Assembly: GCA_004431415.1 (NCBI GenBank)
Contig: QPMI01000040.1
Location: 248,001-312,000 of the forward strand
Direction: 5' to 3'
DNA length: 64,000 bases
Source: Cyanophora paradoxa CCMP329
Taxonomy: Eukaryota; Plantae; Glaucophyta
Part shown: piece after piece, positions 183-57,701 of the stretch
Numbering within the stretch: position 1 is the first letter of the stretch
Layout: every line of letters starts with the position of its first letter
Made by a program: the position numbers and the translations under genes
Notes under the pieces: model-generated
Told to the model about the DNA's origin: nothing
The model's input: the letters and a program-made list of their open reading frames with translations, nothing else
Database searches by the model: none

Positions 183-3100
183 TCAGGCGACGGTGCAGGC
201 CTTGGAGCGGCCGCCGCCGCCGCCGCCGCCGCCGCCCGCCGCGGCGGCCACGCGCAGCTCCTCGATCCTCCGCTGCGCCCGCGCGATCCGCTCGCGCCGC
301 TCCGCCAGCGCCCGCTCGAGGTACGGCACGTCGGTAGTGACGGTGACGGCGACGGCCGGGCCCGCCGCCGCGGCGGCCTCGGCCCTCTTCTGCCCGGCGG
401 ACGCGGGGCGCAAGCCGAGCGCCGCCGCGTTCGGGAGGGACTCCAGGAGCGCGTCCAGGTTCTGCGTGCGTACCCCCGTTGGCGCTCGAACGAAAGCTAC
501 GCGAAAGGGAGGGGGTACACGTACCGCGAGGAGGGCGACGTTTCCTTTCGTCATGTACGCGCGTGACTGCGAGTCGGGGTACAGTCCCTCCACCGCCTGC
601 AGGGGGGCTTCAGGGGGTACGGTAACAACGCCGCCGTGGGGGGCGCAGGGGGGTACCTGGCGGTCGGAGACAACCACCGGCCTCAGCGGCCGCTTGTTCA
701 GCTCCGCCAGCTGCGGAGGGGGAGGCGTTGATCGACGTGCGCAGCGAAAAAAGGCGGGGGTACGGGAATGCAGACCTGGAGGCGGTCGCGGAGGAGGGGG
801 TCGGCGATTGCGGCCTTGGAGAGGAGGGGTACGAAGGCCGAGCACTGCGCGGGCGTCGGGCGAAGACGGAACGGGGCGAGGGGGGGTACGGGGGCGAGCG
901 GGCCTTGACGACGGCCTGGGCGCCATCGTCGCCGCCGCCGCGGACGGCGCCGGCGGAGGGCGGGCGCTGCGTGCCGCCGCCGGAGCAGTCGAGCCAGCAG
1001 CGGGCGCCACGGTGGGCCAGGCCCCGCACGAACTGCTCCGCGAAGGACGCGTCCGCGGCGTGGCACCAGACGAAGAGGAAGGGCGATGGCTCCTCCACGT
1101 CGCAGCGGGCGCCGGGCGTCGCGAGCAGCGCCGCCGCCGCCTGCGCCAGGGCCTCCTGTCCCGCGGGCCCCGCCCCGGCGGCCCCGCCCGTCGCCAGCCG
1201 CTGGGTCAGCGTGAGGGCAAAGGGCGGCAGTCCCGCAGCGAAGAGGGCGTCCCTGCAGCCGGGCGGGCGCGTGAGCGCGTGAGCGGCGGGCGCGCCAAAT
1301 CGGACGGCGCGCAAAGCAGCGCACGTCGAGAGATCCCTGCGCAAGCCGCGAATCAGAGGTGGGTAGAAGATCGATCGAAGAGGTTTAAAAATGGCTTCGC
1401 GCACGCGAACTGCTGCTTCATAAGGGCTCCTTGGAGCTGGTCGTCCAGTGCGCACTTCTCGCGCCAGACAGGGTACACCGCGCGCCCGAGCCGCCGCGCC
1501 GCCGCCAGCTGCGCCCGGCACCGCGCCGACCGCCTCGCGGCGTCGCTGCGGGGCGGGTCTGAGGGGGGGTACGGAACGGAATCTGAGCGGAGTCTCGGCT
1601 CACCTGACCACGAAGATGAGGGCCTGCGCTTTCTTGAGCCCCGCCGACTCCTGCGAACGAAGCGAAAGCCGTCAAGGCGGGGCGGGCGGAGGAAAAAGAG
1701 AAGGGGGGGGAATGCTTCGTTCGCGCACGTCCGCCTCGGAAGGGTCGTCCAGGGCGCACTGCGCAGGGGCGGAGCTTGAACTTAGCTTAAGCTTGAGCAA
1801 TCTTAGCTTCACGAAGTTCAGAGGTTAGCTTAGGGCTCAGCGGGGCCGGCTCTGCTCGGGGCGGGCGGCGCGAAGGGGCGGGGCGGGGCGGGGCGGGGCG
1901 GGGCCCACGGTCAGGTGGGCCGCCTCCAGGCCGGCGTGCAGTCGCCGCGCAAAGGCCGCGTCCTCGGGGGCGTGTCTGCGGCACGCGGTCCCGAATGAGA
2001 CGTGGAAGTTTAATATGAGAGGGAGGGGTATATTTCTGTGCGCACGAAATGAACGCGTCTCGGAGTCCGCTCGCGCGCTTGAGGGCCGCCTGCGGGGGGT
2101 ACGGTGAGTCCGCGGAGCGGGGTACGGGTGCCGGAAGAAAGAGACGGGGGTACGGCCACCTGGAACGAAACGTCGGGGTGGGCCTGCACCACCATCCTCC
2201 GGCTCGGGCCCTGCCCGACGGAGCGGGCGGGGTCGGCCCCTGCGCCGCGCTCACTTAAAGATAGTAGAAAGGCAGAGAGAAGAAGGAAGGAAGGACCGCG
2301 CTGGATGAGGAGGGTGCAGACGTCGAGCATGGCGGGCCCGCAGGCGACTGCGTTGTACAGCGGCGTCTCGCCCCTCGCGTCCGCCGCGCTGCCCCGGAAG
2401 GAAAGCTCGTACTAAGAAAGAAAGCGAGGAAGGCATAAATGTAGGAAGGGGGGTAGCGCACTCGACGGCGGCGTCGGACGCCTCGCGGGCGAGGCGGAGG
2501 GCCGTGTGGCGGAAGCCGTGCCTGGCGGCGGCGACGCCGTCGGCCTCGCAGGGGCTCCGGGCGGGCGGGCGGGCGGGCGGGCGGGCGGGCGGCGCACCGG
2601 CACGCGAGGAGGAGGGCCGACTCGCCGGCGTCCCCGCCGCCGCCTTCGCCGCCGCCCGCCGCCGGCTTCTCGTACCCCCCGTCCTCCTCGCCCCCGTCGT
2701 CGAACTTGCCCTGGCTTTGGAACCACCCCCCGCGGAACCGGCGCCGCTGCGGCCGTGTCAGAGATAGAAATCGGGGGGGTGGGGAGGGGCTCACGAGGAG
2801 GCGATCGGGGCCCTCGAGGGCCAGGAGGCGCATGGCGCCATGCGCCAGCGCCCGAATCGGCCCGCCTGAGAGTGTAAATACGTTCGGTCGGATCAGATGA
2901 AGAAGAGATGTATGCGAACAGATCGATAAAGGCACCCCGCGAGCCGGCCGCAGCCTTGAGCGTCGCCGCGAAGTCGCCCGTCCAGAAAGCCCCCTTGCAG
3001 AGCAGCGCCATGTCCAGGCACGCCCTGCCGGGGGCGTTCGTTCCCTATAAAAAAGGGTACAGTAAAATTCGAATTCGGACCTGACTTCGTCGACGAGCCC

Positions 3101-6100
3101 GTCGGCCGCGACGGCGGCCGCCGTCGCCAGAAACCTGCGGTGCCGGCCGCGGTTCGAGCGCGCGAATCCGAAAGCACATCTAGAATACCGCATATGTACC
3201 CCCCCGCCCTTCCGTAGAGCCGCGGCTCGCGGCTATCGAGCGCCAGCCTCCCGTTGAGTTCGTAGTAGCGCTTCGCGACGCCGCGCAGGATGGGCGGGCG
3301 GGGCGGTCCCGCCCGCCCGCACGCCTCGTCCTCGAGCTTGATGAGATGGGAGCGGACGTGGGCGGCGCCGCCGCGGGCGGCCCCGAGGGGCGTCATGCCC
3401 TCCTCGTCCTGAGCCTCCAGCGAAGCCCCAGAGGCCAGCAGGAGGTCCACCAGCCGCACGCTCTTCCCGTCCCTGCACGCACTGCGCGCGCGCGAGAGTG
3501 GGAGCCGCCCGTGAGCGATCGATCGATCCTGCGCCAGCAACGACAGCACGTGCGCGCACTCGTGGATCGGCTCGCCGCCGACGTACTGGATCGCGTCCTG
3601 GCTCTGGCGCTTGTACGCAACGTCGACCCTCGCGCCGCGCGAGAGGAGCAGCTTCACGATCGCCAGGCCCTCCTCCGTCTCCGCGCGCTGCGCAGCCCCC
3701 AACGCGCTGCGGAAGGTCGTATCCTTGACTTCCGCTCCCTTCGAGAGGGGAAGGGGGGGGGAGGTTCAGGCGGGGTGCGGTGGCAGGAGGGAGGAAGTCA
3801 GCGGGGTACGCCTCACCCTGTCGAGGAGCATCTGGACGATCTCAAGGCGGCGGCTGCCGTCCGGGCGGTGGCCGCAGGCGTAACCGAGCGGGCTCCCGTA
3901 GGGGGATTCCTCGTTGACGTCCGCGCCCGCCTCTACAATCATTCGGATGGTCTCGTCGTCGTGGCTCGCTTGGAACGCCTGCGGTGAAAAATCAAGAGGG
4001 GGGTACGGCGTCTAGAAGGACGGAGAGGACCGCGACGAGGAGGCCGGCGGGGGGCGCCCCGGCCGCGAGGAGCTCCCTCAGGGCGACCAGATTCTTCCTG
4101 CTCAGCGCGTTCACGGGCCGCGCGTCGGCCATGTTCGGTTTGCGCTCCAGGATCGTCCTGCGGCCGGAGGAGGAGGCTCGACGGCCGAACGGCGCGTCCA
4201 CCGCCGCAGCGCGTGCACGCGCACCGCAGGACGGCAGTAGAGCTGTTGCGCGCCGCCAGGTTCATCGGCTGCGGGCCGGGGCCGCATCAGATCAGAGGCG
4301 CGGCGCTCCTCGGCGCGGGAGGGAGGGAGGGAGGGCTCACATGAAGCTGGACGTCGCCGGTGCTGTTCTCCACGCTCGCCCCGCGGCTGAGCAGATCGAC
4401 GACGACGGCCTCCGGGGGGGACGCCGCCAGCGCCACCTGCAGCGGCGTCTTGCCCTCCTTGGTCTTGGCCTCCAGCTCCGCCCCGGCCTCCAGCAGGACG
4501 CGGGCCGTCTCTACGACGTCGCCCTCGAGGAGCTGAGAGGCCTTGGCGTGCATCGGCCTGCTCTCGTCGTCGAACGGGCTTCTCCTCGTGAAGTTTATGC
4601 CGAAGCTCGCTCTGCGCGGCGTGTCGGCCGCTGCTGAAGAGCGACAGCGCCAAAGAAGGGAGAGGGCCCGCACATTCCGCAAGAGACGGCGAGGTGGAGC
4701 GGGGTCAGGCCGCCGCCGGCGCCGGCGACCGGCTCGGTGGGGAGGGAGACGGGTACACCCATGTCGAGGAGCGCCTTGACGCAGGCGGGCCGCGCGCTGG
4801 CGGCCGCCGCGTGAAGGGCGCTGTACCCTTCCTTCGGCCCGTACTGCCGGGCAGTTAGCTAACATGAAAAAAGAACTCGCGGGGGGGTACAACGAAACCG
4901 GCGGCGCACCTTGGAGTCTCCTTTGGGGGGTACGAAGGGCGCCGCGAGGTTCACGCCCAGCTCCTTGAGGGCCCTGTGGTCCCATAAGAGTCGTACGGAC
5001 TCGAGAAGGGGGGGTACGACGCGCCGGAGGACCTCGGTCTCCCCGGCGGCGGCGGCGAGGAGGGCGGCGGACTGGCCGCAGGCGGCCACGTCCGCGCCGC
5101 GCTGCGCGAGGAGCCTCACACACTCGACGTGGCCACGCTCCGCCGCGATCTCCAGCGCCGACGCCTGCGCCGCGTCAGCGCGGGAGCAATTCGCGGGATG
5201 CCGGGGCCGGGTGGGGGTACGGGCGCGCCGTGCCCTTGAATCTGCGCTCGCGGGAGAGAATGCCTTTAGCGTTGGAGTCTGCCCCCCGATCCAGGAGGAT
5301 CTTCAGGACGTCCAGGTGCCCCCCCGCCGCCGCCTCCAGCAGGCTCGGCCAGGGCTCCTCGTAGTCGTACCCCCGCTTCTTCCCTTCGTCGCCCGCGGTC
5401 GGCGGCTGCGGCTCTCCGTCCTTCGCCCCCGCCCCGTGCTCCAAGAGGTACCTGCGCGTGAATCGGATCGCGCACCCCTGCAGAAACCGCGTACCCCCGG
5501 GCGCACTGGACGGCGGCGGCGTGGCCGAATCGCGCGGCGAGGTTGAGGGGCGTGCCGAGGCGCCTCCTGTGCACCCGCGGGTTCTCCTTGCGCTCTTCGA
5601 CGAGGTACTTCAGCGCTTCCAGGCGGCCGGCGCCCGCCGCGCCGTGCAGGGGGTACACCCGCTCCGAGATCAGCAGGCCGCCCGGGCCCTCCTCGGGCTT
5701 GGCGTCCCCCCCTGATGCCTCATCTTCTTCGCCCCCGTCCTTCTTCGGAGGCTTCTTGGGACCGCGCTCCAGCAGATACCTGAGCGGGTGTCTCACGCTC
5801 CAGAGAGTTCCGAGTCGATCAAAATTTCGAACGGCACCTCGTCAGCTCGACGCTGCCGCTCTCAGCCGCGCAGAAACAGAGCACGTAGTAGATCTGCTCG
5901 TGGAGCCAGCCGTAGCGGACCTTCTCCAGCTCGTTCTCGGGGCACCTGCTTTGCCTCCACCGCCATTCCGCGTCGTAGTTGCTGCCCGGCGGCGGCCCCC
6001 GCGGCGCCGGCCACGAGTCGAGCAGCAGGCGAGTGAGGGCGAGGCCGCCGGCCCGCGCGGCGGCGATGCACACGCCGGCGTAAGATCGCACTGCCTGCGC

Positions 6101-6805
6101 GGCGTGCGCCTCTCTATTCAGCTCCTCGTCGAAGCCCTGCCGCGCTGCAAGGAGCCGCCTGCGTCGAAGCGTCAGCGGCGCGGCGGAAGGGCCGCTCCTC
6201 GGCACTCAACGCGGCGCACTTGAGCGTCTCTGCTTCTCCTGAGCTGGCGGCCTTGTAGAGCGCGCACGGCTCGACGCTGTAGCTCGCATCTGCTTGGAGG
6301 CCGGTCGCGGAGAATGCAAGGCTGGCGGTGCGCTCGAAGAGGAGCCTGCCGGCCGCAGCGTACGGTCGGCCCACCAACGAGCAGCTGACAGCGGGGCAGG
6401 GTGCGAACCTCAGGGCCTCGCGGTGCCCGCCGCTGACCGCGTGCCAAATTGGAGTGCGGCCATCAGAGTCGGGGGCAGCGATGAGGGAGTTGGAATGGGC
6501 GCCGCGGTCGAGTAGCAACCTGTACAGCGGAGATCATCGCGTGCGCGTGGTCGGCGGCGCCATCGGCGGCGCTTCGAATTCGCGCACCGGCAGGCGTCCA
6601 CGTTTCCGACCGACGCAGCGTACGCAAGTGGCTGTCGTAAGCTCGATCAAGCTTTGCCGACGGTTTGCGCGGTAGTGGCCAAACCCGCACGCACCGTTAG
6701 GCCATCTCCGCCGCGCGCGACGTGCGGGTCTTGTGGAAGGTCAGCACCCCTAGCGTACTCGCTCCAGAAAGAGGCAAGTCCGTTCGTGCTCTGTGATCCG
6801 CCCAT
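183..6805 (-). CDS. Multi-exon ankyrin-repeat + TIR + TIR + coiled-coil protein with N-terminal MGxxxS and C-terminal CaaX (paralog A; both TIRs lack the catalytic Glu)
   Basis: Manual splicing gives ATG 6805 MGGSQSTNG...DGLT|PLAYAASVGNVDACR|LLLDRGA...DGRTPIWHAVSGGH. Many further ankyrin repeats follow (YPLHGAAGAGRLEALKYLVE, EGKTPLQVAL, EGMTPLGAA, GETPLYNAV). TIR1 reads DAFIS|HAPEDAAFARRLHAGLEAAHLT|CALDD...|AQALIFVVS|DAARRSARCRAQLAAARRLGRAVYPVW. TIR2 reads FLFVWCHAADASFAEQFVRGLAHRGARCWLDC...CSAFVPLLS. Then a coiled coil (ERRERIARAQRRIEEL) and the end RSKACTVA* (stop 183-185). Confidence 0.85.
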
Positions 6806-6954
6806 GCCGCGGCCGCTGTGGTTGTAACCACGCTATCTAACCACTAGTAACCAGCTGCAGGGGGGTACTAGCTCATAATTGGAAAGAGGATAGACCGGAC
6901 GGAGTTCATCCGGCGCTGCTCAGCAGCTCGCCGAGTCGTGCGAGGAGCGGCGAG
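6806..6954. promoter_or_regulatory. 149-bp putative bidirectional promoter between the two ankyrin-TIR paralogs
   Basis: Divergent ATGs at 6805 (-) and 6955 (+). The spacer is lower in GC and carries TAACCA at 6825, 6838 and 6848 plus the palindrome TGGTT-GT-AACCA at 6819-6830. Confidence 0.6.
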
Positions 6955-9900
6955 ATGGAGCTAGAGCCCAGCGAGGCACTGCTTATGGCCGCCGGGGCTG
7001 GAGACGTGCGCGAAGTTCGGTGCGCGCCCTGCAGATGATGAGCCGCTGCTTGCACAATCAACGCTCCTTGCAGAGACCTCCTCGCGCGTGGAGCCTTCGC
7101 GGATACGCCCTCGCGGCGACCGCTGACGACGAAGGACGGCAAGGAGATCCCCGTCGGCCGCACGGCGCTCCACGAAGCGGCTCGAGCCGGTCACATCGAC
7201 GTTTTGAGGTGCTGCGCGCAGCATAGCCCACTGCTGCCGTACGCGCCGCAGTTGCTGATCGACTGATGCGCCAGGATTCTCTGCGCCGAGCCATACGTGG
7301 ATGTGAACGTGCGCGCCTTGATCCCGGATGGGGATACAGAGCGCTACGGCCCTTCTCCGCTCGACGTTTCCGCCGCCTCCAACCGCGTGGATGCCATCCG
7401 CTTCCTCCTCGAGCGAGGCGCGAAGCAGCCCGAGAAGGCCCTCATCGCCGCCCTGGGAGCGAAAGTAGACACCAGCGACGCCGTCCGGTGCGTCGTATTC
7501 GCACGGCTCGCCCGCCCGCGGTCGCCTTGCGCGTGCTGACGTCTCGGCGGTTTCGCAGTGTCCTTCTGGAGACGGACGCGACCGCCAGCTGCAGGCACGT
7601 CATTTCCAGTCTAGCCGCTGTGCTCGTGGCGCATGTGGGCAGCTTGGGGACGCTCCAGTGCGCGAGCCCTCTGGCGGGCCGTTCTTTCCCTCATTCCGAC
7701 CCCCACGCAGGGCCATCCTGGCTGCAACCCCGGCGGGCGAGAGGCGAAAGGAGGCGGCCGGCTGCGCCTTCGGGGCCGCCCTCTCCGAAAGCGGAGCGGT
7801 CGTGCGGTTCGTTCGGACTTCCCATCGCTCGGCCAGCCGGCCCCTGACCGGTCCCAAGGGTCCTGGCCGCAGAGGGTATGCCAGTGGACGGGGAGACCCA
7901 CAAAGCGGGGTACACGGCCCTCGGCCTCGCGGCGCTCTCCGGCAAGCTCGAGGCCGTCACGTGCGCGCCGCCTCCAGATTTCTCGTACCCCGGACCTCAA
8001 AGGCTCGGCAGCGCGTTCGTTGAGCTGGGGGCGAGGCTCTCGGGTATCGAGAAGGCGGGGGGGAAGGACGGCCCGGCCCCCGACGTCATCTGTTGGGCAG
8101 CCGAAGGGGGGCACGTGCCCGTCATTCGGTACGCCCGTACCCCGGGGTGGGCCTGCCGGATCTGACCGGGGGTACAGGTACTTGCTGTCGCGCGGGGCGT
8201 CGCTGGAAGCGCGGGACGCGGAGGGGTACACTCCCATCCTCAAGGCGGCGGCCTGCGGCCACGGACCGGCGGTTGTGGCACTGGCTGAGGCGGGAGCGGA
8301 TCCCACCGCCCGATCCACGGGGCCGATGGGCGCCCCCCTCGAGGGAGGCGAGCCCTCGAAGGGTCTGGCCGACTTTGCGGCGGCGCTGTCGTACCCCCCC
8401 GTCCTGCGTCTCCTCCGGGCGCGAGGCATCCCGTACGACCTGTCGACGAAGTCGGGGGCCTTCGATAGATCCGCCCCGCCGAGGGACACCGAGTTCTGGA
8501 TGTTCTTTCAGGGCTGGAGAGAGGTGCCCCGGCCCCTTGCCCCGCCCTTTCTCCCGCCCGCGGTCCCGAGCGGCGCGCGCGCGCGCAGAGGAGGCGCACG
8601 CCGCTGGGCTGGACGGCGCATCGCGGGGACGCGGAGGCGGTGCGGGAGCTGCTGGCGGCCGGCGCGGACCCGAGCGAGCCGGCGCTCGTGCTCCGGTTCG
8701 GCGACGAAGGGAAGGTGGTATCCCAGGAGGGCGCGCGGCCGCTCTACGAGGCGGCCGCCGGCGGCTTCCCCGAGGTCGTGCGGCTGCTGGTGCAGGCGGG
8801 GGCGGACCCTGAGGCGCGCCAGCAGGACAGCGGCGGCGGCCCGAGCGCCAGCGCCAGCGGCGCCCTGAGCTTCCGCCCGCTCGAGAAGGCCATCGCCTCG
8901 GGCAAGGTCGAGGCCGCGCGGGCCCTACTGGAGCTCGGCTGCGGTGTCACGGACGACGCGTACGCGCCGGCGGCGGAGGGGGCGGAGCCGCGCGCCGCGG
9001 CGCTGCCCCTCGCCTGCGAGATCGGGAACCTCGACCTCGTCCGGTGCGAACGAAGGGCCGGCCCCCTCCTTCTTCGTCTTAACTTGAGGGACGCAGGGCT
9101 CTGCTGGCGCGGGGCGCCTCGCCGGCGTCGAAGCACGGGCACAGCGCGACGCCCTACGCGATCGCGGCCCGGGGCGGCCGCGCCGACATCCTCCGGTGCG
9201 TCTGTAGGGGTACGGTGGGCGTTATCAGAGATTGAGGGGCGGCGTGTGTGCAGGGCGCTGGTGGAGCGGGAGGCGCCGTCGCGCGACGTGGTGGAGAGCG
9301 TCGCGGCGGGCGCGGCCCGGGCGGGCGCCGTCGACTGCCTCCGCGTCGCTCTGGACCTCGGGGCGGATCTCCGCAGGCGATTCGTGGAGGAAGACGCGGC
9401 GCAGTCGGCCCACGGCCGCGGCCCGAAGCCCTTCGTGACGCTGCTGCTGCGGGCCGCGGCTGGCGGGCACCTGGAGTGCGTGCGGGAGCTCCTCGGCAGG
9501 GGCGCCGACCCGAGGGAGGTGGAGGGCGTGCCGCCGCCTCCGCCGAAGGACGAGGGCGGCGGGCCGAAGCCGCAGCAGCCGCCCGAGTTCGTCCTGAGCG
9601 GCCGCTCGGCGCTGGAGTGCGCGGCGGCGGGCGGGCACGCCGGCGTCGTGCGCCTGCTCGCCTCCCGCGGCGCGCCCGTCGACCGCCCGGGCTCGGGCCG
9701 CGACTCGGCGCTGGGGCTGGCGGCCGCGGGTCGGCACAAGGAGACCGTGCGGGCCCTGCTGGAGTGCGGGGCGGACCCCGCGCGCCCTGAGGCGAAGTAC
9801 ACCTTTCGCGGGGACGAGTGGTGCCCCGCGCTGCACGTCGCCGCGCAGAAGTCGGACCTCCACACCCTCCGGTGCGCTCCGCTTCGAATTCGATCTGTCT

Positions 9901-12900
9901 TGGTCGAGCCGAGCTCGCGGGCCGCAGCGTGCTGCTCGACGCCGGCGCACCGGTCGACCAGAGCGACTCGAAGAACCGGACGCCCCTCATGCGGCCCCTC
10001 GTCTCCTCCGACGGCTCCGACCCGACCGGCCTCCTCCCCACCGTACAGGAGCTGCTGCGGCGCGGGGCGGACCCCTTCCACGGCTCCAAGCCGACGGACG
10101 GCTCGGGAGACTTCATGGATCTGTGCATCCTTCACCAGGTTCGATCCTCCGCGGCCCCTCTAAATCTTCCGGCTTGCAACTGGATCTGATTTCGGGGGAG
10201 GGTGCAGGTGTCCTGTGGAATGACGCGCCTCGAAGTCCTCGTGTACCCCCCTCCCCGCCCCACGCCCCTTTTGAACACTGCACAGCCCCCCTGAAGCCTC
10301 CCCCCCCTTCTTCCCCCCCCCCTTCCCTTCGCGAAGCGCGATGGAGGAGGCGGGCTTTCGGGTACCCCGGCAGTCGGCGGCGATGGCGAGTGCCATCCTG
10401 TTTGCCTTCAGCAAAGGGGCTTTCGCTACCGCCAGGTAGCTAAAAATAGCCCCCCTTCGAATAGTGATTACTCGTACCCCGGCCAACAATCTTCGTTCGC
10501 AGGTGGTACCTGGAGCGCGGAGTCGACACGAGCCTCGCTTACCTGTCCGGCGAGGAGCGCGCGGACCTGCTGAAGGTCGGTGGTACCCCTCCCTTGGCGC
10601 CCGCCCCCCTCGAGCTCGGCCGGCCGTGGCGGCCGCGGTCGCTCCGATCGCGAACTGGGGGCGCGGCAGGAGCGCCCCTTGCTGCACGCGCTGCTCGTGC
10701 ACGCCACCGGCAAGCAGGCCGACGACTTCCTCGCCTGCCTGCGGTTCGACTCCCGGCGGGAACCTTTCTGTTCCCTTCCCTTACGGCCTTCGGCGTTCCA
10801 GGCTGGTCCTGGACAACGGAGCGGGCGTGAACGCGTCCTTCCGCGGGTCCACGCGTGCGTACCCCGCCCCAGTTCCGCACGTACCCCCCTGAGCGCCCCT
10901 CTGCAGCGCTGCACCTCGCCGCCGGGAACGCCGCGGCCGGCCTCGAGGCCCTTCGGGTGCTGCTCGAGCGCGGGGCGGACGTGCAGGCGCGTGGCAAGGG
11001 CGGGCGCACGCCGCTGCTCGTCGCTGTGAGCGGCGCCGGCAAGGACGAGGAGAGGCTCCCTTTCGTTCGGGCGCTCCTGGACGCGGGGGCGGACGTTGGG
11101 GCGCGCGACGAGGCCGGCCGCAGCGCCGCGGCCGAGGCGGCAGAGGCGCACAGCCTGCCGCTGTTCCGGCTCCTGATGGAGCGCGGCGCCGCTCGCCACG
11201 TCCAGGAGGGAGAGATCCTCGCGGCGGCGAGCCGCCCCCGCGAGAGCAACCGGAGCCGCGATGAGAAGGCCATCGCTGACGCGCGCAACTTCCTCGCGTA
11301 AGCGCCCCTCGCGCTTTCGGAAGCTCGGATCAGTCGGGCTGACGGGGGGTAGGGCGGTGCTGGAGGACGAGCTGCGGGAGGTGGAGGCGGAGGGGTACGC
11401 GTGGCCGGAAGTGGCGCGCGACGCGGAGGGCGGGCTGGCGGGCCGCGCCCGCGGCTACTCGATGGCGCTGCGGGCGGCGCTGGACGACGACTCGGGGTCC
11501 GCCGCGGCCGCCGACGACGCGCGCCAGTGGGCCGACCTGCTGCTCTGCCTGCGGGGGCCCCTCCGCCCGAGCGAGCTGCACCTGAAGCTGGTCGCCGATG
11601 AGGACGGCCCGCGCGCGGCGGCGCTCGCGGCGGCGGCGCGCGTGCTGCGCCTCGAGGGCCGCGCCGCGCCCGAGGCGGCCGCGGAGGAGGAGAAGCCCTC
11701 CAGGGCCGCCGGGCGCTCGGACAGGAAGGCGGAGGGGGAGGCGCAGAAGGACGAGGACCCCGCGGAGGAGGCAGCGGACGCGGCGGACGGGGAGACGGCG
11801 CTCCACGCCGCCTGCCGCGCCGGCCTGCGCCTCACGGCCCTCCGCCTCGCCCGCGCCGTACCCCCCGACGCCGTCGAGTGCGCGCGCTCGCGCGCCTCGC
11901 TTCGGCTGTGCGGCCCTCTCTCACTCGCGGCCGGCTGCAGCGCGGCGGACGCGGCAGAGGAGACGGCGCTCTCGCGGGCCGTCGCCTTCGGCCCGCCCCT
12001 CTTCGACGTCTGCGCCCTCCTCATCCAGAAGGGCGCGCCCCGCGCCCCTCCCGAGCTGAGCTGCCTTGGCTGAGTTGCGGTGCAGGGGCGGACCTGGGGC
12101 GGCAGATCGGCAGCGGGGAGGGCGGCCGGCAGAGGCGCGCGCTCCTTTTTGAAGCGCTCTCAAGCCCCTCCCCGGTGACACTCGCCGCAGGGTGGTGCTG
12201 GACGCGACGCGCGACGCCGCGTACCGCGCGCGGCTGAAGCGCGCCGCCACCAGCCGCGACGCGTTCATCTCGTGCGCTCGCGTACCCCCCTTTTCGACCG
12301 GTGCCCCGCTCGGGTCCGACGCGGCCGACTCGGCCGGGCGGCAGGTACGGGCACCACCCGCCGGAGGTGGCGCGCTTCACGGCGCGGCTGAGGGACCGCT
12401 TCCAGGCCGAGCAGGTCTCGGTGCGCGGGGAACGCCGGCGCTCCTTGGGACCCAGCGAGGGGGAAGCTTCGAGGGGCCCCGAGGGACGTCCCCCTAGGAC
12501 CTAGCTCCCCCGCCTCCATCCTGTCTGCCCCTGACCGCGCCTCAGTGCTGGATGGACGAGATGAAAGCCACGGGTAAACTCCGCTTCGCGCGCCGCATAC
12601 GCGCCGGGCCGCTGCCGCTCGGTGTGAGCCTGACCGGGGTCCCCTGCAGGCATCGAGGCGGGGACCGAGGTTCGCCACGTCGTCCGCTGCGGCCGCCCGC
12701 GGCCGCCCCGCCCCTGACCGCCCCGCCCCGGCTGCAGTGGCGGGAGCAGATCGGCGTCGGAATCAGGGCCGCGCGGGTCGTCGTCTTCATCGCTAGCAAG
12801 GCGCGCTCAGCGTAAGATCCGAGAATCCTGCGGCCTGACTGACGGCCCACCCGCCCTCGCCCGCCCTCCTCCGCAGCACTCGTGCGCGTCGGACTGGTGC

Positions 12901-14723
12901 ATGCTCGAGCTCTCCCGGGCCCGCGGTGCGCCCCCGCGCCCCCCGCCCTGCCCCGGCCCGCCTCCTCGCCCCCCTGACTCCCGGGTCCTCAGACCTCGGG
13001 CGCCCCGTCTTCCCCGTGTGGGCCGAGGCGCCCTTCCCCCTCGACGAGCGCGCCTCCGGCCTCCTCCGCGGCTGCCGCTTCCTCGACCTCTCCTCGTCCG
13101 CCCCGCCCCGCGCTTGGCTCAGCTTAGTTTAGTTAAGCTTTGCATGCGCAAAGATTTAAGCTTAGTTAAGATCTTAGCTTATCCAAGATCTAAGATCTAA
13201 GTCCGCCCCTTCCCACGCTTGGCTCGGCTTGCTCTCTTAGCTTGCGCCCCTCGGCCAGGCCGGCGCTCCTGGAGGCCGGGTTCCCCCCCCTCCTCGCCGA
13301 CGTGCGCCGCGCGGTGGAGGGCGCCGCCGCCGCCGACCCCGCAGCCTCTGAGGATCCCGCCCGCGTCCGCCCCGCCCCGCCCCTCCCCGCTCGGCTTGCA
13401 GGCTCTAAGCCCAAGTTCACCTGCTGGCAGGCGCTGCTCGCGATGCCGGGGGCGCGCTGCGCGGTGCGCCCGGGGTCCTTCCTCGCCCTCTGGTGCGCGC
13501 CGGAGGCCGCCCCCCACGCCGCCGCCGTCCTCGCCGCCCTCGCCTTCCGCGGCGTACCCTGCTGGCTCGACTGCCCCGTACCCCCTTTCCCTCTGCCCCT
13601 TCTCGTCCTCGTCCCTCGTGAGCCGCCCCGCCGCAGCTCCCGGGCGACTCGGCGGAGACGCGGGCGGCGGCGGACGCGGCGCTCGCCGCCTGCGCGGCGT
13701 TTGTACCCCTCCTCTCCCCCGCCCCCTCCGCCCACGACGATCGCCTCCTCGCCGAGCGCATCCGGGCGCGTACCCCCTCCCAGCGTACCCCCTTCCTCCC
13801 CTTCCGTTCTGTACCCCCTGAACCGTCGCGCGCGCAGCGCGCCCGCGCCGCCCACCGCCCCGTCCGCTCCGTTCTCCTCTCGGGCCTTCACGTGCGTCAT
13901 ACCCCTGGGGCTCTCCCCTTTTTTCGATTGATTTGAACGCATCTACCCAGGTCCCCCCGGCGCTGGAGTACTCGCTGGCGCGTACCCCCAAGTTCCCGTT
14001 CTTCCCCGAGGACCCCGACAGCTTCTTCCCCGTACCCCTCCCTTCCCCGCGCGCACCCCTCGCAATCAGCTTCCGGCTGACCCGCAGCCCCGGCCCGCAG
14101 TGCCTGAACGTGCTCCTAGCCGAGGCCGGCGGCCCCGCCCCCGCCGCCCCGGTACGGTACCCCGACCCCGAGCCTTCCCTCCCGCGCGCCCCTCGCCTGA
14201 ACGCGAACGACGCCGCGGGGCAGCCGAAGCTGGAGGGCCCGCCGGCGCTGCACGCGCCCGCGACCGCAGCCTCCCCCGAGGAATCGGTGCGCGCGCACGC
14301 GGCGGCGGCGGCGCCCGCTCCTTGGTTGAGCGGCGCTGACCGGTTCGGTGTGGCCCGCCAGGCCCGCGCGGCGGCGCTGCAGGCGGAGATCGCGGCGCGA
14401 GACCGCGAGCTAGAGCAGGTGACCCCTCATATCAGATCAGATCAGATCAGATCAGATCAGATCTTGACCCCTACCCCACTTACTCCGGGCGGGGAACGCA
14501 GCTCGAGGGGCGGGTCGCGGAGCTGGAGGCAGCAGCGGCCCGGGGCTCGAAGAAGGGGAAGAAGAAGGGCGGGACGCGGCCGAAGGGGACGCCGCCGCCC
14601 GACCCACCCCTCCTCCTCGCCCCGGGGCCGGGGCCCGCCGGGGCTTCCGGATCCCACGGGGCGGCGCCCCCGGGCAGCCATCGCGATCGGGAAGACAGGA
14701 GCAAGTCGTGCGCGCTGATGTGA
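6955..14723 (+). CDS. Multi-exon ankyrin-repeat + TIR + TIR + coiled-coil protein with C-terminal CaaX (paralog B; TIR1 retains the catalytic Glu)
   Basis: ATG 6955 MELEPSEALLMAAGAGDVREVR|DLLARGA...GRTALHEAARAGH. Many ankyrin repeats (EGYTPILKAAACGH, RPLYEAAAGGFPEVVRLLVQAGAD, GRSALECAAAGGHAGVVRLLASRGA, GRTPLLVAV, GETALHAAC). TIR1 reads RDAFIS|YGHHPPEVARFTARLRDRFQAEQVS|...MDEMKAT...WREQIGVGIRAARVVVFIASK|HSCASDWCMLELSRAR|DLGRPVFPVW. TIR2 reads FLALWCAPEAAPHAAAVLAALAFRGVPCWLDC...AFVPLLS. A coiled coil follows. The last exon (14502-14723) contains KKGKKK and ends RSKSCALM*. Confidence 0.88.
14430..14463 (+). repeat. (ATCAG)n microsatellite in the last intron of ankyrin-TIR paralog B
   Basis: atcagatcagatcagatcagatcagatcagatc read directly; related (GATCT/GACCT) tracts occur at about 34403-34437 and 35182-35210. 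Confidence 0.9.
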
Positions 14724-14787: not shown

Positions 14788-14890
14788 AATCAGCTGGAAA
14801 TCAGCTGGAATCAGCTGGAATCAGGCGCGGCTTGGAATAATCAGATGAATTGTTTTTAATCAGCTGGAATCGGGCGCGGCTTGGATCAGA
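14788..14890 (+). repeat. Short tandem repeats (AATCAGCTGG units; ggcgcggcttgga x2) just 3' of paralog B
   Basis: aatcagctggaaatcagctggaatcagctggaatcagg ... taatcagctggaatcgggcgcggcttgga. Confidence 0.75.
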
Positions 14891-27699: not shown

Positions 27700-30600
27700 C
27701 TTCGTCAGGGGCGACGCGGTATTTTACAAAAGAGACCTTTAACATAAGAGTGTTTATTAGAAACAATAACATCATTTGAAGCGATTCTATCACCCGGATA
27801 AAGTAAAGTAACATATAAAAGGGCGTCTATAAAGGCGCCCGCTCCGTCGGCTCAGACCGCACGGACCTGTTCGGACAGGGCCGCCTGCCGCGCAGCCACC
27901 TGCACCGAGGACCGGTCAGCGTTTCGGGCGGGGCGGGGCGGGGCGGGGCGGGGCGGGGCGCAGGACAGAGAGGGGGTACAGACCTCCGCGATCTCGTCGC
28001 GCGTCGCCTTGACCTGGGTCAGGTGAGCGGGCGGATGAAGCGCGCGGGTTCGGATTCGAACCTGCGCGGCGAGCGCCGCGGCGCGAATGCCGGCGGCCAT
28101 GGCGTTGTCTTCCGCCTCCTGCGTGAGAGGCTGAGAGGAGAGGCGGCGCCCTTTCAGATCAAATCCCATCGGACCTTGCGTGCGCGGTCCGTCGCCTGCT
28201 CCGCTTGCCCCTGGGCCACCTGCGGGGCCGGGGCCGGTCAGGAGAACGGGGGGGGGAAGCCGTGCGGGGGTACAGCACCTTCAAAGCCTTGTCGTGGGAC
28301 GCGACGAGCGCGTTCAGCTTCTCCTCGACTGAACGGATCGCGCCGTCCTGCGGGGGTACCGGGTTCAGTCCCGGTGGGGGTACAGGCGACCCGGAGGGGG
28401 TACGGTTCCACCTTCATGTTTTCCTGCGCGCCGCATCAGAGGCAGGGGGGGAAGATGGGTGGGGGGTACGCGCCTGCGCCTGGATGGAATCGCAGAACTC
28501 GTCCCAGCGCTGCTTCCGCTTCCGCGCGTTCTGCCACTGCGCCAGCGCCCGGAGCTCCAGCGCATCGAATCTGGACGGTAGAATTAAAATAAAAAATTAA
28601 TTTTCCGGGGGAAGCCCCTGAAAGGCACGGGCACAAACGCACCCGACGCGCTTCTTGGGACCCGTGTGGCCCTCCTGCCCCCGGCCCGGGCGTCAAGGGG
28701 GTACGGCATAGCGGAGGGGTACGCACGGCCGTGAGCTTGCGGTCGCGGTCCACTTTGCGGTCGTGCCACCGGAAGATGGCCTGAGGGGGGTACGCGCTCG
28801 AGACGAGGGGGTACAACCGCGACACAGGAGGGTTCGGGGGCCGGCGAGGGGTACCTGGATGCAGCGCGCGGCCGCGACGCGATACTCCGTCCTGCGGGTA
28901 CACAGATTAAACGTCGAAACCGTGGAAGGGGAACGAAAGTGGGGGGTACGTGCATGATCATGGCGCCCTTCATCGTGCGGACGATGCGCTCCTCTCCTGG
29001 GTGCAGGCGGGCCTGTTCGGGCGGGGGGGGGGGTACGCGACCGCCGCTCAGAGGGGCGCGGCGGGGGGGCTCGAGGGGCTCTAGAAGCGCCTCTAGGTCC
29101 CGGGCTCCAGGCAAAGCCAAGCCTAGCCCAGCCTGGCCTGGCCTAGCGTGGCCTTGCCTTGCCTAGCTGAGCGGGGCGGGGCGGGGCGGGCGCGCCTTGT
29201 CGATCATGACGGTAGTGGCGGTGGCCGTCAGGACGAGCCCGCACAGGATCGCCGTCGCGATCACCACGCGCCCCTGCCGGGGAGAGGGTGAGGATGGGGG
29301 TGGGTGGGGGGGGGGGGGGGGGGGATGGAGGGTGGCGGATGGAGGAGGCGGGGGGAAGAAAGAGGGAGGAGCGTAGAGAGGGGTTGTGGGGGCTAGCTCG
29401 CACCGGGTACGTGTTCGGGTAGATGTCTTGCCGGCGGGGAAGGAAGGAGGGGGGGGGGGGGGCGAAGTCAGGGGCGCGGGGCTCGTGAGTCCGGGGTACG
29501 CGATAGAGCACCTCCGAACCCGACGGTCGTCATCCCTATGAACAGGTTCCACAGTGCCTTCGAGAGGCCATCTGGGCGGGGTACGGTGATTTCAGGCGTG
29601 GAGGGGGTGGATGGGGGGTGGATGGGGGTGCGCGGCTCCGCGGGCCACAGGAAAGCGGCGCACAGTGGGGGTCGTAGGCCCGCTCGAAGATGAGGAGGGC
29701 GTCTGCGGGTGTATAGTCGAGTGGGGTCAGGAGGTACGGTTGAGGGGTGGGGGTACGGGTCGGGGCGCACAGGAGGAGACGCAGAGGACGGCGAGGAAGG
29801 ATACGACGAGGGTGCGCAGGGGGTACAGCGCGATGTACGCCCGCATCGCCAGGCTGGTGGGGGCGGGGGAGAGGGCGCGGTCAGGCCGGGCTGGGGCGCG
29901 GTTGCGGGCGCGGGCGGGGTAAGCTTTAGGCTGCTTTGGAGAGAAAGGGGACGGGAAGAAAGGGGCCCCGGCAGGATTCGATGGTAAAGAAAGGGCGGAA
30001 AAGTGCCCCGGGCGGACCTGAAGTCGGGCGAGATGCCGTTGGCGCGCGAGAGGGCCCGCCCGTGGCCGCGGAAGATCACGCTGGGCCCCGAAGGGAGGCG
30101 ACGTCAGCCACGCAGGGGCACGGGACGCCGCTTCTAGAGTCCACTTCTCTCCGCCCCACCCCTCTCCAGCCAGGCCAGCCTGGAGTAGAAGGTCTTCCTT
30201 CCGCCCCGGCAAGCCCGGGCGAGCGGACCTGTGGTCGCGGGCGCTCTTGAGGAGGACGTAAAGGCGCAGGAAGGTCAGCAGCGCCAGCGCCCCCTCCGAG
30301 TGCCGGTACTCCCTCTCCTCGACTTTTCGGGGGGGGGGGGGGGGGGGGGAGAAGGTGGTGAGGGGGTACGGGATTTCTCGGGCGCGGGGAGCGGGGCGGG
30401 GCGAGGGGGGTACTGCGCACAGGCTTCGTCGACGGGGAAGGAGAACTCGACCTTGGGGGGAAGGTGCAGGCAGACCTGCGGGGCGGCCGGTCAGCCCAAA
30501 GCGCAGCCGGGCGCGGGCGTGGACGCGGGCGTTGTTTCTGTTCAGCTACCGCGCGCCCGACGGGCTTCGTCTTTAGCTTCGGATTCGGCTACGCGGGGGG

Positions 30601-32038
30601 GCTTTGCGAGCCGGGGCGGGGGACGGGGGGTTCTCGTGCACCACGAGGCACTCGAAGAGGAGGGGGGGGATGAGACCCGCCGTGAAGAGGTTCTCTGGGG
30701 GGGGAGTAAGAGACGGGGAGGGGAGGGGAGGGGAAGGGGTACAGGGGCGCGCCGTGGACGAGGAATCGGTTCACGAGCTTCATTTGAGCGAGGCGGGTGC
30801 GGTACAGGCGGGCGAGAAGAAGACCTGCGGTGGTACTTGAATTCAAAGGCCAAGGGGGGGTGGGGATTTCGGGCGGGGCGTACACATGAGGCCGCATATG
30901 CCAGTGACGCACGAGCGTATGACGATGCTACCCACCGCCTGCGCCTGCTGGGGGTACAACTCGACCTGCCGGGGTACGAGATGTCCCGGTGGCAGATGGG
31001 GCCACCGAGCGGGGGGTACGCACGTCGAGGATGGCCAGCGCCACGCTCGCGATCGCGAGGAACGACATCAAATCGTTGAGCTGAGGGATACGCCGTTTAG
31101 AGGAAAGGTGAATACGCCATCCGTTTTCGCCGCACGAACCTGGATCTTCTGCTCGTTGAGGGATACCTCCTTCTCCAGCTGTGGAAGGGGGACCCGGCCC
31201 GTCAGGAGCTCGGATCGAACCCGGATTTGATCCGGATCGAATCTCACCTGGAAGCTGGCGCCTGGGGCCAGGGACTCGACCAGGCGGAAGAGGCGACTCT
31301 TGGCAGCGGTCCTGGGTACAGAAAACGGCGTGAGTCACGGCAGGGGGGCGAAGCACTCCGGCGGGGCGTACCCCGCGTGCTCCAGGATCTCCACGCTGGA
31401 GGAAGACGTGATCCGCCGCTTCTTGCGCGCGCCCTTCCATCTGCGAGGATCGAATTCGGCGCGGACCGGGCCACGCCACATCCGATCGGATCAGATCGAT
31501 CGCACCCGTCCGATTGGCCCACATCGCCGTGCTCCTGCTTTGCCTTGGGGTCCTTTTCGCGCCTGAAGCCGTTCTTGACCGCGAGGGCCGTGGCCACGGC
31601 CGCACCGAAGAAAGCGCCACCGCTGCGCAAGCCGGTCAGGTCAAACCCGCGCCGGCGTCGGCGGGAGCGGAGGCGCAGACGCACGTGGTGCTGCGCGGGA
31701 GATTGGGCCGCGCCTCTGCGTTCATCTCCTGCAGCGTGGAGCTGCCGCGCGTTGGCGCGCGGGCGGGTCTCAGCGCGCTCCGACTCCAGGCGAGAAGAGA
31801 GCGGGGAGGCGGCGGACCTCTTTCCCATGTTCCGCAGCTTCTCGCGGATCGCGAGGAGCGAGCCGCGTCGCTCCTGGTTCGGCCGGGGCGCATTGGAGCC
31901 CTCGGACGCCACCGCCGTCAAGTTCGGCGACAGCCGCCCGCTGCTCTCCTCGCTCTCGCCGTCCGTGTCCTGGTCCGACATCGTCGCGCCCTTCCTAGCT
32001 ACGACATGCTGCTCGTCGTGGTGGACCCTGCTCCCCAT
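27261..32038 (-). CDS. KCNN: Small-conductance Ca2+/calmodulin-activated (SK/KCNN-like) potassium channel, multi-exon
   Basis: S1 LNDLMSFLAIASVALAILD; S4 LALLTFLRLYVLLK; S5 YPLRTLVVSFLAVLCVSS. Pore ALWNLFIGMTTVGFG|DIYPNTYP|GRVVIATAILCGLVLTATATTVMI matches the SK-type TxGYGDxxPxTxxGR pattern. Followed by LHPGEERIV, an IQ-like RVAAARCIQ|AIFRWH and a C-terminal coiled coil. Confidence 0.85.
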
Positions 32039-32210
32039 CTAACGCCCGGAGTTCACAGCCGGGGCAGGGCCGGGGCTCGTAGGCAGCCCACTCTCAGATA
32101 CAGCTACTACAAATGCCGGATCGCGGCTCGCTGGGCGCGCCTCTCCGCCTAACCGTCGGGCGCGCGGCGGCTCCCCCGTTGCGACACAGCGACGGTGGGG
32201 CGACAGCGCA

Positions 32211-50722: not shown

Positions 50723-57701
<6,979 letters not shown>

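Follow-up and report, generated by a model that had tools for sequence, protein, structure and literature searches.

Two head-to-head genes of Cyanophora paradoxa encode related TIR proteins of similar architecture, which raises the question of whether the two form one enzyme and one pseudo-enzyme, and what a catalytically incomplete partner might contribute. Here, we describe these genes, A and B, from a 64,000-nucleotide window of the C. paradoxa CCMP329 assembly (contig QPMI01000040.1, positions 248,001 to 312,000); both are genes for ankyrin-TIR-TIR-coiled coil-CaaX proteins. An earlier note on this DNA proposed that the first TIR domain of B (B-TIR1) is the only enzyme-like domain, that the first TIR domain of A (A-TIR1) is a pseudo-enzyme and that both second domains (TIR2s) are non-catalytic, an assignment supported by the sequence, predicted models and phylogeny presented below.

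Gene organization

Gene A (183..6805, minus strand; public model tig00000158_g10180, 1485 aa, about 33 exons) encodes, in order, an N-terminal MGGSQS, ankyrin repeats, pseudo-TIR1, pseudo-TIR2, a coiled coil and a CaaX box (CTVA; 183..197 with the stop codon, minus strand). Gene B (6955..14723, plus strand; public model tig00000158_g10181, 1780 aa, about 36 exons) encodes ankyrin repeats, TIR1, pseudo-TIR2, a coiled coil, a polybasic stretch and a CaaX box (CALM; 14709..14723 with the stop codon, plus strand). The divergent start codons, at 6805 (minus) for A and 6955 (plus) for B, are separated by a spacer of 149 nt (6806..6954), a putative shared promoter. Public EukProt models (P0003 for g10180 and P0001 for g10181) were used and map to the window over 1478 of 1485 residues for A and 1778 of 1780 for B, and hand-built exon models match them in the catalytic regions. 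Gene A is transcribed and spliced, with ankyrin exons joined in contigs of runs X17-X19. Pfam searches of both proteins found ankyrin and TIR families only, with NB-ARC and LRR absent from each.

TIR domains

Both TIR1 domains pass the Pfam TIR_2 cut-off. A-TIR1 (aa about 1108-1232, six exons; 1192..2062, minus strand) matches with an E-value of 3e-15 and its model aligns to the SARM1 TIR with a Z-score of 15.3; B-TIR1 (aa about 1338-1472; 12255..13307, plus strand) matches with an E-value of 9e-18 and its model aligns to SPARTA and the SARM1 TIR with Z-scores of 17.3 and 16.8, respectively. A glutamate in αC preceded by a tryptophan four residues earlier is found in B-TIR1 only (Trp1412, 12895-12897, and Glu1416, GAG, 12907-12909; 12895..12909, plus strand), and HMMER aligns the family glutamate with E208 in the DWTNYEL motif of AbTir. 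A-TIR1 has Arg1169 (CGG; 1521..1523, minus strand) at the position of the αC Trp of B and the complete-type paralogs, and Gln1173 (CAG; 1509..1511, minus strand) at the catalytic position, and both TIR2s have Leu and Arg at these two positions. The Gln and Glu codons are thus as the earlier note had claimed, and the motifs that it quoted (SARCRAQL, SDWCMLEL, LLRDRLQLAE and LLAERIRRAR) read correctly. A base error as the source of the A Gln was ruled out by a DNA contig that shows zero differences over 1440-1862 (from a run that is possibly of the source strain) and by paralog g19209, which shares both the Gln and the short loop.

The loop of A-TIR1, which had also been called shortened, has 15 residues, counted from the BB-loop Asp up to where βC begins, compared with 25 in B. 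This BB-loop/αB segment of A (two exons; 1606..1758, minus strand) is therefore 10 residues shorter than that of B and lacks the conserved Gly and the αB Trp; in B the BB-loop and αB are intact (three small exons, the last with a GC donor; 12546..12800, plus strand), with BB-loop Asp and Gly both present. A hidden exon behind the short A loop was ruled out, as the intron there is 78 nt and the public model concurs, and other A-clade members likewise have short or scrambled loops. B-TIR1 retains the βA Ser, BB-loop Asp and Gly, αC Trp and Glu, and βD Trp, and B and the complete-type paralogs match AbTir at Ser, Asp, Gly, Trp and Glu. On the opposite, partner side of the site, A keeps Trp1188 at the end of βD (1464..1466, minus strand), which aligns with W227 of AbTir, through which the partner subunit stacks on the adenine, along with DE-loop Gln1206 (1410..1412, minus strand). 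B keeps the βD Trp (Trp1431) and carries Arg1450 at the position of the DE-loop Gln (13019..13078, plus strand). We infer from secondary-structure register only that the DE-loop Gln is equivalent to SARM1 N679.

The TIR2 domains of A (aa about 1269-1401; 438..1083, minus strand) and B (aa about 1528-1659; 13473..14127, plus strand) are degenerate TIR folds with variable BB-loops and with Arg1349 (CGC; 782..784, minus strand) and Arg1603 (CGC, 13757-13759) at the catalytic position. TIR2s of all 13 aligned members match Pfam TIR_2 weakly (best E-value 3e-6), and the TIR secondary-structure order is seen for TIR2 in the predicted models of both proteins. The earlier placement of Arg at the catalytic position agrees with AlphaFold2 models, which place all of Q1173, E1416, R1349 and R1603 six residues ahead of the αC C-terminus, and with hhalign of TIR2 to TIR1 (probability 96.4, E-value 1e-9), in which the TIR2 Arg falls on the TIR1 Glu. 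An Asp or Glu precedes this Arg by one residue in both TIR2s and occupies, by register, the outward -1 position (Tyr207 in AbTir), outside the pocket; a shifted register placing it in the pocket was rejected on the basis of helix register and hhalign. Foldseek matches to sugar isomerases, with an rmsd of about 17 Å, reflect only the presence of two tandem alpha/beta domains.

Phylogeny and residue losses

A and B fall in separate clades, each with support of 100/99, and a tree of TIR2 only also separates the two (96/98 and 96/93), which rules out the clades being an artefact of their defining motifs. A and B are therefore not recent tandem copies. The A clade is well supported and comprises seven paralogs. 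None of the seven retains an intact BB-loop/αB or the αC Trp, yet four, g22379 and g587 among them, keep the Glu. Gln does not, then, define the A type, and the weight that the earlier note had placed on the Glu-to-Gln change is not supported; in this clade, loss of BB-loop/αB and αC Trp came first and loss of Glu later. Because even the four Glu-bearing paralogs share these losses, the Q-to-E reversion of A suggested in that note is predicted not to restore activity by itself, and would not be a clean test.

With the complete-type paralogs, to which g9371 and g21388 belong, as reference, A-specific losses of conserved residues are 32:3 for the catalytic half and B-specific losses are 5:5; the difference in distribution gives Fisher p values of 0.008, or 0.08 without the BB-loop/αB segment, both of which are rough, as alignment columns are non-independent. 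The DE-loop Gln is present in all 6 A members, in 5 of 6 complete-type members and in none of the 11 B members, and identity to the complete-type paralogs from αD to αE is 29/36/22% for B versus 42/56/37% for A, although loss on the B partner face is modest. It is very unlikely that all four TIRs lack NADase activity and that the family signals by protein binding only, with a structural role for the B Glu. The Glu persists in four A-clade members without the rest of the site, so it can outlast catalysis, and Glu-bearing TIRs can be inactive, as reported for amoeba TirB and TirD in vitro (10.64898/2026.04.30.722052); against this, the whole catalytic half is conserved in B and the complete-type paralogs, matching AbTir, with 83% identity in BB-loop/αB and 91% in αC within the B clade.

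A second A and B neighbour pair, g21701/g21702, is identified by consecutive gene numbers and its members are equally distant; head-to-head orientation is confirmed for the g10180/g10181 pair only, and recurrence is seen as this one further gene-number pair. Complementary residue losses, the 149 nt spacer and this second neighbourhood together suggest, with nearly even probability, that A and B function as a co-transcribed enzyme/pseudo-enzyme pair resembling RRS1/RPS4 or CHS3/CSA1 on an ankyrin chassis without NB-ARC, in which B would give the catalytic half and A the regulating partner face. The same three observations speak against A and B being old, independently working paralogs, with the A TIR a non-enzymatic scaffold like the TIRs of TLRs or MyD88 and the layout left from an inverted duplication. 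We regard this as quite unlikely, even though A and B share just 28% identity in their ankyrin arrays, tandem paralogs are common and several B-type genes have no visible partner.

Proposed mechanism and comparison with known systems

The NADase sites of TIRs are composite, as described for AbTir (bioRxiv 10.1101/2022.05.07.491051) and for M and SARM1 (10.64898/2026.02.03.703613). For an A/B pair, both proteins would be prenylated onto the same membrane and would meet through their TIRs and coiled coils, with the ankyrin arrays holding the pair off until ligand binding. The βA loop, BB-loop and αB of B-TIR1, together with its αC Trp and Glu, would make up the catalytic half of a composite NAD site. 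A-TIR1, unable to provide that half, would offer the partner face (βD Trp and DE loop). The site would form when the B BB-loop docks onto A, from which chain extension would be impossible; the Arg-bearing TIR2s, with neither half of a site, may serve as spacers or scaffolds. In defence or stress signalling, the pair would probably act by cleaving NAD or by producing an ADPR-type signal. The BB-loop of CSA1 has been proposed to dock head-to-tail onto CHS3 (PMC11298796), and in plant sensors the Glu or the BB-loop Asp is missing, with a short BB-loop in RRS1 (PMC13732033).

A role for A as sensor or inhibitor, as proposed in the earlier note, is possible; a co-catalytic partner role would fit at least as well, because A selectively keeps the adenine-side partner surface. 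In its pure form, the sensor or inhibitor role would have A cap or hold B, with active sites formed by B-B contacts after A is released. Retention of the adenine-stacking βD Trp by B would allow such B-B sites, which is also a point against a composite A/B site; RPS4 is repressed by RRS1 through the AE interface (PMC13732033), and a head-to-tail strand would stop at any subunit that lacks a BB-loop (as follows from PMC8635717). We nevertheless consider it unlikely, since loss of the DE-loop Gln by the whole B clade and its drift over αD to αE would be unexpected if B-B contacts alone were used. The strongest form of the A/B pairing, an obligate two-gene split-active-site TIR NADase that evolved independently in a glaucophyte alga, in which a membrane-tethered ankyrin-TIR protein would provide the catalytic face and its head-to-head partner the adenine-binding face with no NB-ARC switch, is rather doubtful.

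Like A and B, Arabidopsis RRS1/RPS4 and CHS3/CSA1 are divergently transcribed paralogs: the Glu and BB-loop are retained by one partner, whereas in its counterpart the Glu is missing and the BB-loop is short or altered (PMC13732033, PMC11298796). Unlike these TIR-NLR pairs, A and B have no NB-ARC or LRR, ankyrin repeats replace the sensor region, and the TIRs are C-terminal, with an Arg-bearing pseudo-TIR, coiled coil and CaaX box downstream of each. The family TIRs are of TIR_2 type and their sequences resemble bacterial AbTir/PdTIR more than plant TIRs, so the A/B pairing would have arisen separately from the plant pairs. SARM1, AbTir and SPARTA TIR-APAZ share their fold with the A and B TIR1s (Z-scores 15-17) and their catalytic-site residues with B-TIR1, but form composite sites from identical subunits, unlike the proposed A/B site. 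Oomycete ankyrin-TIR proteins also combine a repeat array with a C-terminal TIR in a microbial eukaryote (PMC9153377), and Dictyostelium TirE, with RCC1 repeats and two diverged TIRs, has a similar repeat-to-C-terminal-TIR design (10.64898/2026.04.30.722052); the accessible portions of these sources do not describe either as enzyme/pseudo-enzyme gene pairs, and neither was among the matches of our family sequence searches. Those matches included no family members outside Cyanophora, within searches limited by query length and word sharing. A metagenome scan turned up two TIR matches, both short and distant (30-32% identity), Atlas searches gave generic TIR clusters only, and single TIR exons as queries gave zero Pfam matches. 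Literature searches found no paper on Cyanophora or glaucophyte TIR pairs.

Enzyme/pseudo-enzyme TIR receptor pairs are known from land-plant NLRs, and the building of an active site by two TIRs is still debated. If true, a separate origin on another chassis would make this layout a general way to control a toxic NAD-cutting enzyme, and A and B would offer a simpler system for testing whether a dead partner completes or only blocks the site. The four A-type paralogs in which the Glu survives while the remainder of the catalytic half is missing suggest that a retained glutamate is a poor predictor of activity. Should the split-active-site reading be true, A and B would together form a heteromeric TIR enzyme that is not a plant NLR, and the steps towards it would be preserved in the family, from a complete ancestor through loss of the BB-loop and Trp to the later loss of Glu.

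Description

Genes A (183-6805, minus strand; 1485 aa; EukProt P0003 = tig00000158_g10180) and B (6955-14723, plus strand; 1780 aa; EukProt P0001 = g10181) lie head to head with 149 nt between their start codons, in eukaryotic, high-GC DNA with many introns. Searches were run exon by exon and with an alignment of three exons, and later with public protein models; full-length proteins were retrieved by exon-level profile search, named by exact look-up as Cyanophora paradoxa EukProt models, and mapped to the window over 1478/1485 (A) and 1778/1780 (B) residues. Both proteins carry, in the same order, ankyrin repeats, a TIR_2 domain (TIR1), a degenerate second TIR (TIR2), a probable coiled coil (judged from sequence) and a CaaX box, and a domain search of both yielded no NB-ARC or LRR match. 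A is transcribed, with ankyrin exons (TIR exons were not among the pieces listed) joined across introns in contigs of three runs from two samples that we take to be RNA. The N-terminus of A (MGGSQS, 6788-6805, minus) is myristoylation-like, as is that of its closest paralog g19209 (MGASFGS); A ends in CTVA (183-197, minus) and B in a polybasic stretch and CALM (14502-14723, plus). CaaX-like C-termini occur in 11/23 family models, spread over all three family groups, so a membrane anchor of this type looks ancestral.

An earlier note, made from the sequence alone, held that B-TIR1 keeps the NADase Glu, that a Gln makes A-TIR1 a pseudo-enzyme, and that both TIR2s have Arg. The codons read as it gave them, CAG at 1509-1511 (A) and GAG at 12907-12909 (B), and exon models built by hand before the public ones were known gave identical TIR sequences. 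A DNA contig over 1440-1862, from a run that may be the source strain itself, showed zero differences, and g19209 independently has Gln and an identical 15-residue loop; we therefore reject a base error at the Gln codon. The reading frame of the B catalytic exon hinges on a GC-start intron (12801-12876). In both genes, several introns begin with GC rather than GT, mostly after exonic AG or AAG (12801; the 11941-12190 region; 903, minus), and a possible 81-nt GC-AG intron lies in the TIR1-TIR2 linker of B (13321-13401), where the public model reads through and AlphaFold2 confidence is low. AT-rich low-complexity inserts of AGCT/AGAT type sit in two longer introns of the TIR regions, 150 and 163 nt in length (1775-1835, 13115-13245), and AATCAGCTGG repeats resembling them are present at 14788-14824.

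Modelled with AlphaFold2 (mean pLDDT: A 84, B 78.5), the TIR-TIR part of each protein has two TIR-type domains, with Z scores of 15.3 for A-TIR1 against SARM1, and of 16.8 and 17.3 for B-TIR1 against SARM1 and SPARTA TIR. Gln1173, Glu1416, Arg1349 and Arg1603 share one αC position in the models, each six residues short of the end of the helix, and hhalign likewise matched the TIR1 Glu column to the TIR2 Arg, bearing out the claimed placement of all four; pocket geometry is inferred from this register. By HMMER, the family Trp aligns to AbTir W204, the Glu to E208 and the βD Trp to W227 (roles from bioRxiv 10.1101/2022.05.07.491051). The TIR2 Arg (782-784, minus, A; 13757-13759, plus, B) is invariant in 13 aligned A-, B- and complete-type TIR2s (13/13 with a weak Pfam TIR_2 match) and differs in some complete-type and fragmentary models; given this invariance, it seems selected rather than decayed. 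The Asp or Glu adjoining it occupies the -1 position, equivalent to AbTir Tyr207, an inter-strand residue (bioRxiv 10.1101/2022.05.07.491051). The TIR2s have no βA Ser, αC Trp or βD Trp, and thus lack both halves of the site.

The Cyanophora family comprises about 25 models, some fragmentary, which fall into an A clade (support 100/99) and a B clade (100/99), alongside a grade of complete-type members in which BB-loop, Trp and Glu are retained and, in 5/6, a DE-loop Gln as well; a TIR2-only tree recovers both clades (96/98 and 96/93). The BB-loop/αB motif and the αC Trp (now Arg or Leu) are gone from every one of the seven A-clade members, while the catalytic position is Glu in four, Gln in two and His in one. 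The pseudo-enzyme reading of A is thus upheld at the sequence level, on wider grounds than the Gln. The three members that have no Glu group together on a single sub-branch, not firmly supported (79/96), and the simplest order would be loss of loop and Trp first and of Glu afterwards. With loop motif and Trp also gone, a Gln-to-Glu reversion should not revive A. Outside the window, P0010 (g11412) branches as sister of the B clade; the DE-loop Gln is lost there as well, and this paralog may represent an early step toward the B type.

A composite TIR NADase site takes its BB-loop, αB and αC Trp/Glu from one subunit and its βD aromatic and DE surface from the next (PMC8635717; bioRxiv 10.1101/2022.05.07.491051; 10.64898/2026.02.03.703613). 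Counted over positions that the complete-type group conserves, losses specific to A number 32 in βA-αC versus 3 in βD-αE, and those specific to B 5 versus 5 (Fisher p 0.008, or 0.08 without BB-loop/αB; alignment columns are not independent). From αD to αE, A is nearer to the complete type than B, and the DE-loop Gln, which by register would lie close to SARM1 N679, is present in 6/6 A and 0/11 B members. A keeps only the partner-side set; B keeps the catalytic-side set and also the βD Trp, so its partner-side loss is only partial. The split between surfaces is therefore strong for A and modest for B, and favours a site built jointly from B and A. Within an enzyme/pseudo-enzyme pair, we tentatively assign A the partner face, a role it quite possibly has; that A is purely an inhibitor of B is less probable. 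A TIR that bears Glu can still be inactive (10.64898/2026.04.30.722052), and BB-loop variation by itself can switch TIR activity; that none of these TIRs is catalytic nevertheless seems unlikely to us, B retaining loop, Trp and Glu.

Consecutive gene numbers mark a second A-plus-B neighbourhood, made up of A-type g21701 (with His) and B-type g21702. We consider it improbable that A and B are neighbours working independently. Elsewhere in the window, an intron-rich ABC transporter gene at about 51000-57000 (minus), with two ABC_membrane Pfam matches, looks ABCC/MRP-like by eye, and a gene at about 27800-32200 (minus), in which an exon near 29470-29560 resembles a potassium-channel pore (..MTTVGFG), probably encodes an ion channel.

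We found no paper on such TIR pairs in glaucophytes; PMC9153377 refers to uncharacterised ankyrin-TIR proteins of oomycetes. In plant paired TIR-NLRs, an executor has Glu and BB-loop and a sensor lacks Glu or the BB-loop Asp (PMC13732033); RRS1 has a short BB-loop (PMC13732033), and in CHS3/CSA1 the executor BB-loop is proposed to dock on the sensor (PMC11298796). A and B are likewise divergent genes, one partner with Glu and BB-loop and the other without; unlike those pairs, they lack NB-ARC and LRR, which places them outside that family. On sequence and models, the asymmetry between A and B is real and goes beyond a single residue, and the two most likely form a membrane-tethered enzyme/pseudo-enzyme TIR pair, for which, by analogy with the plant pairs, an immune role may be envisaged.
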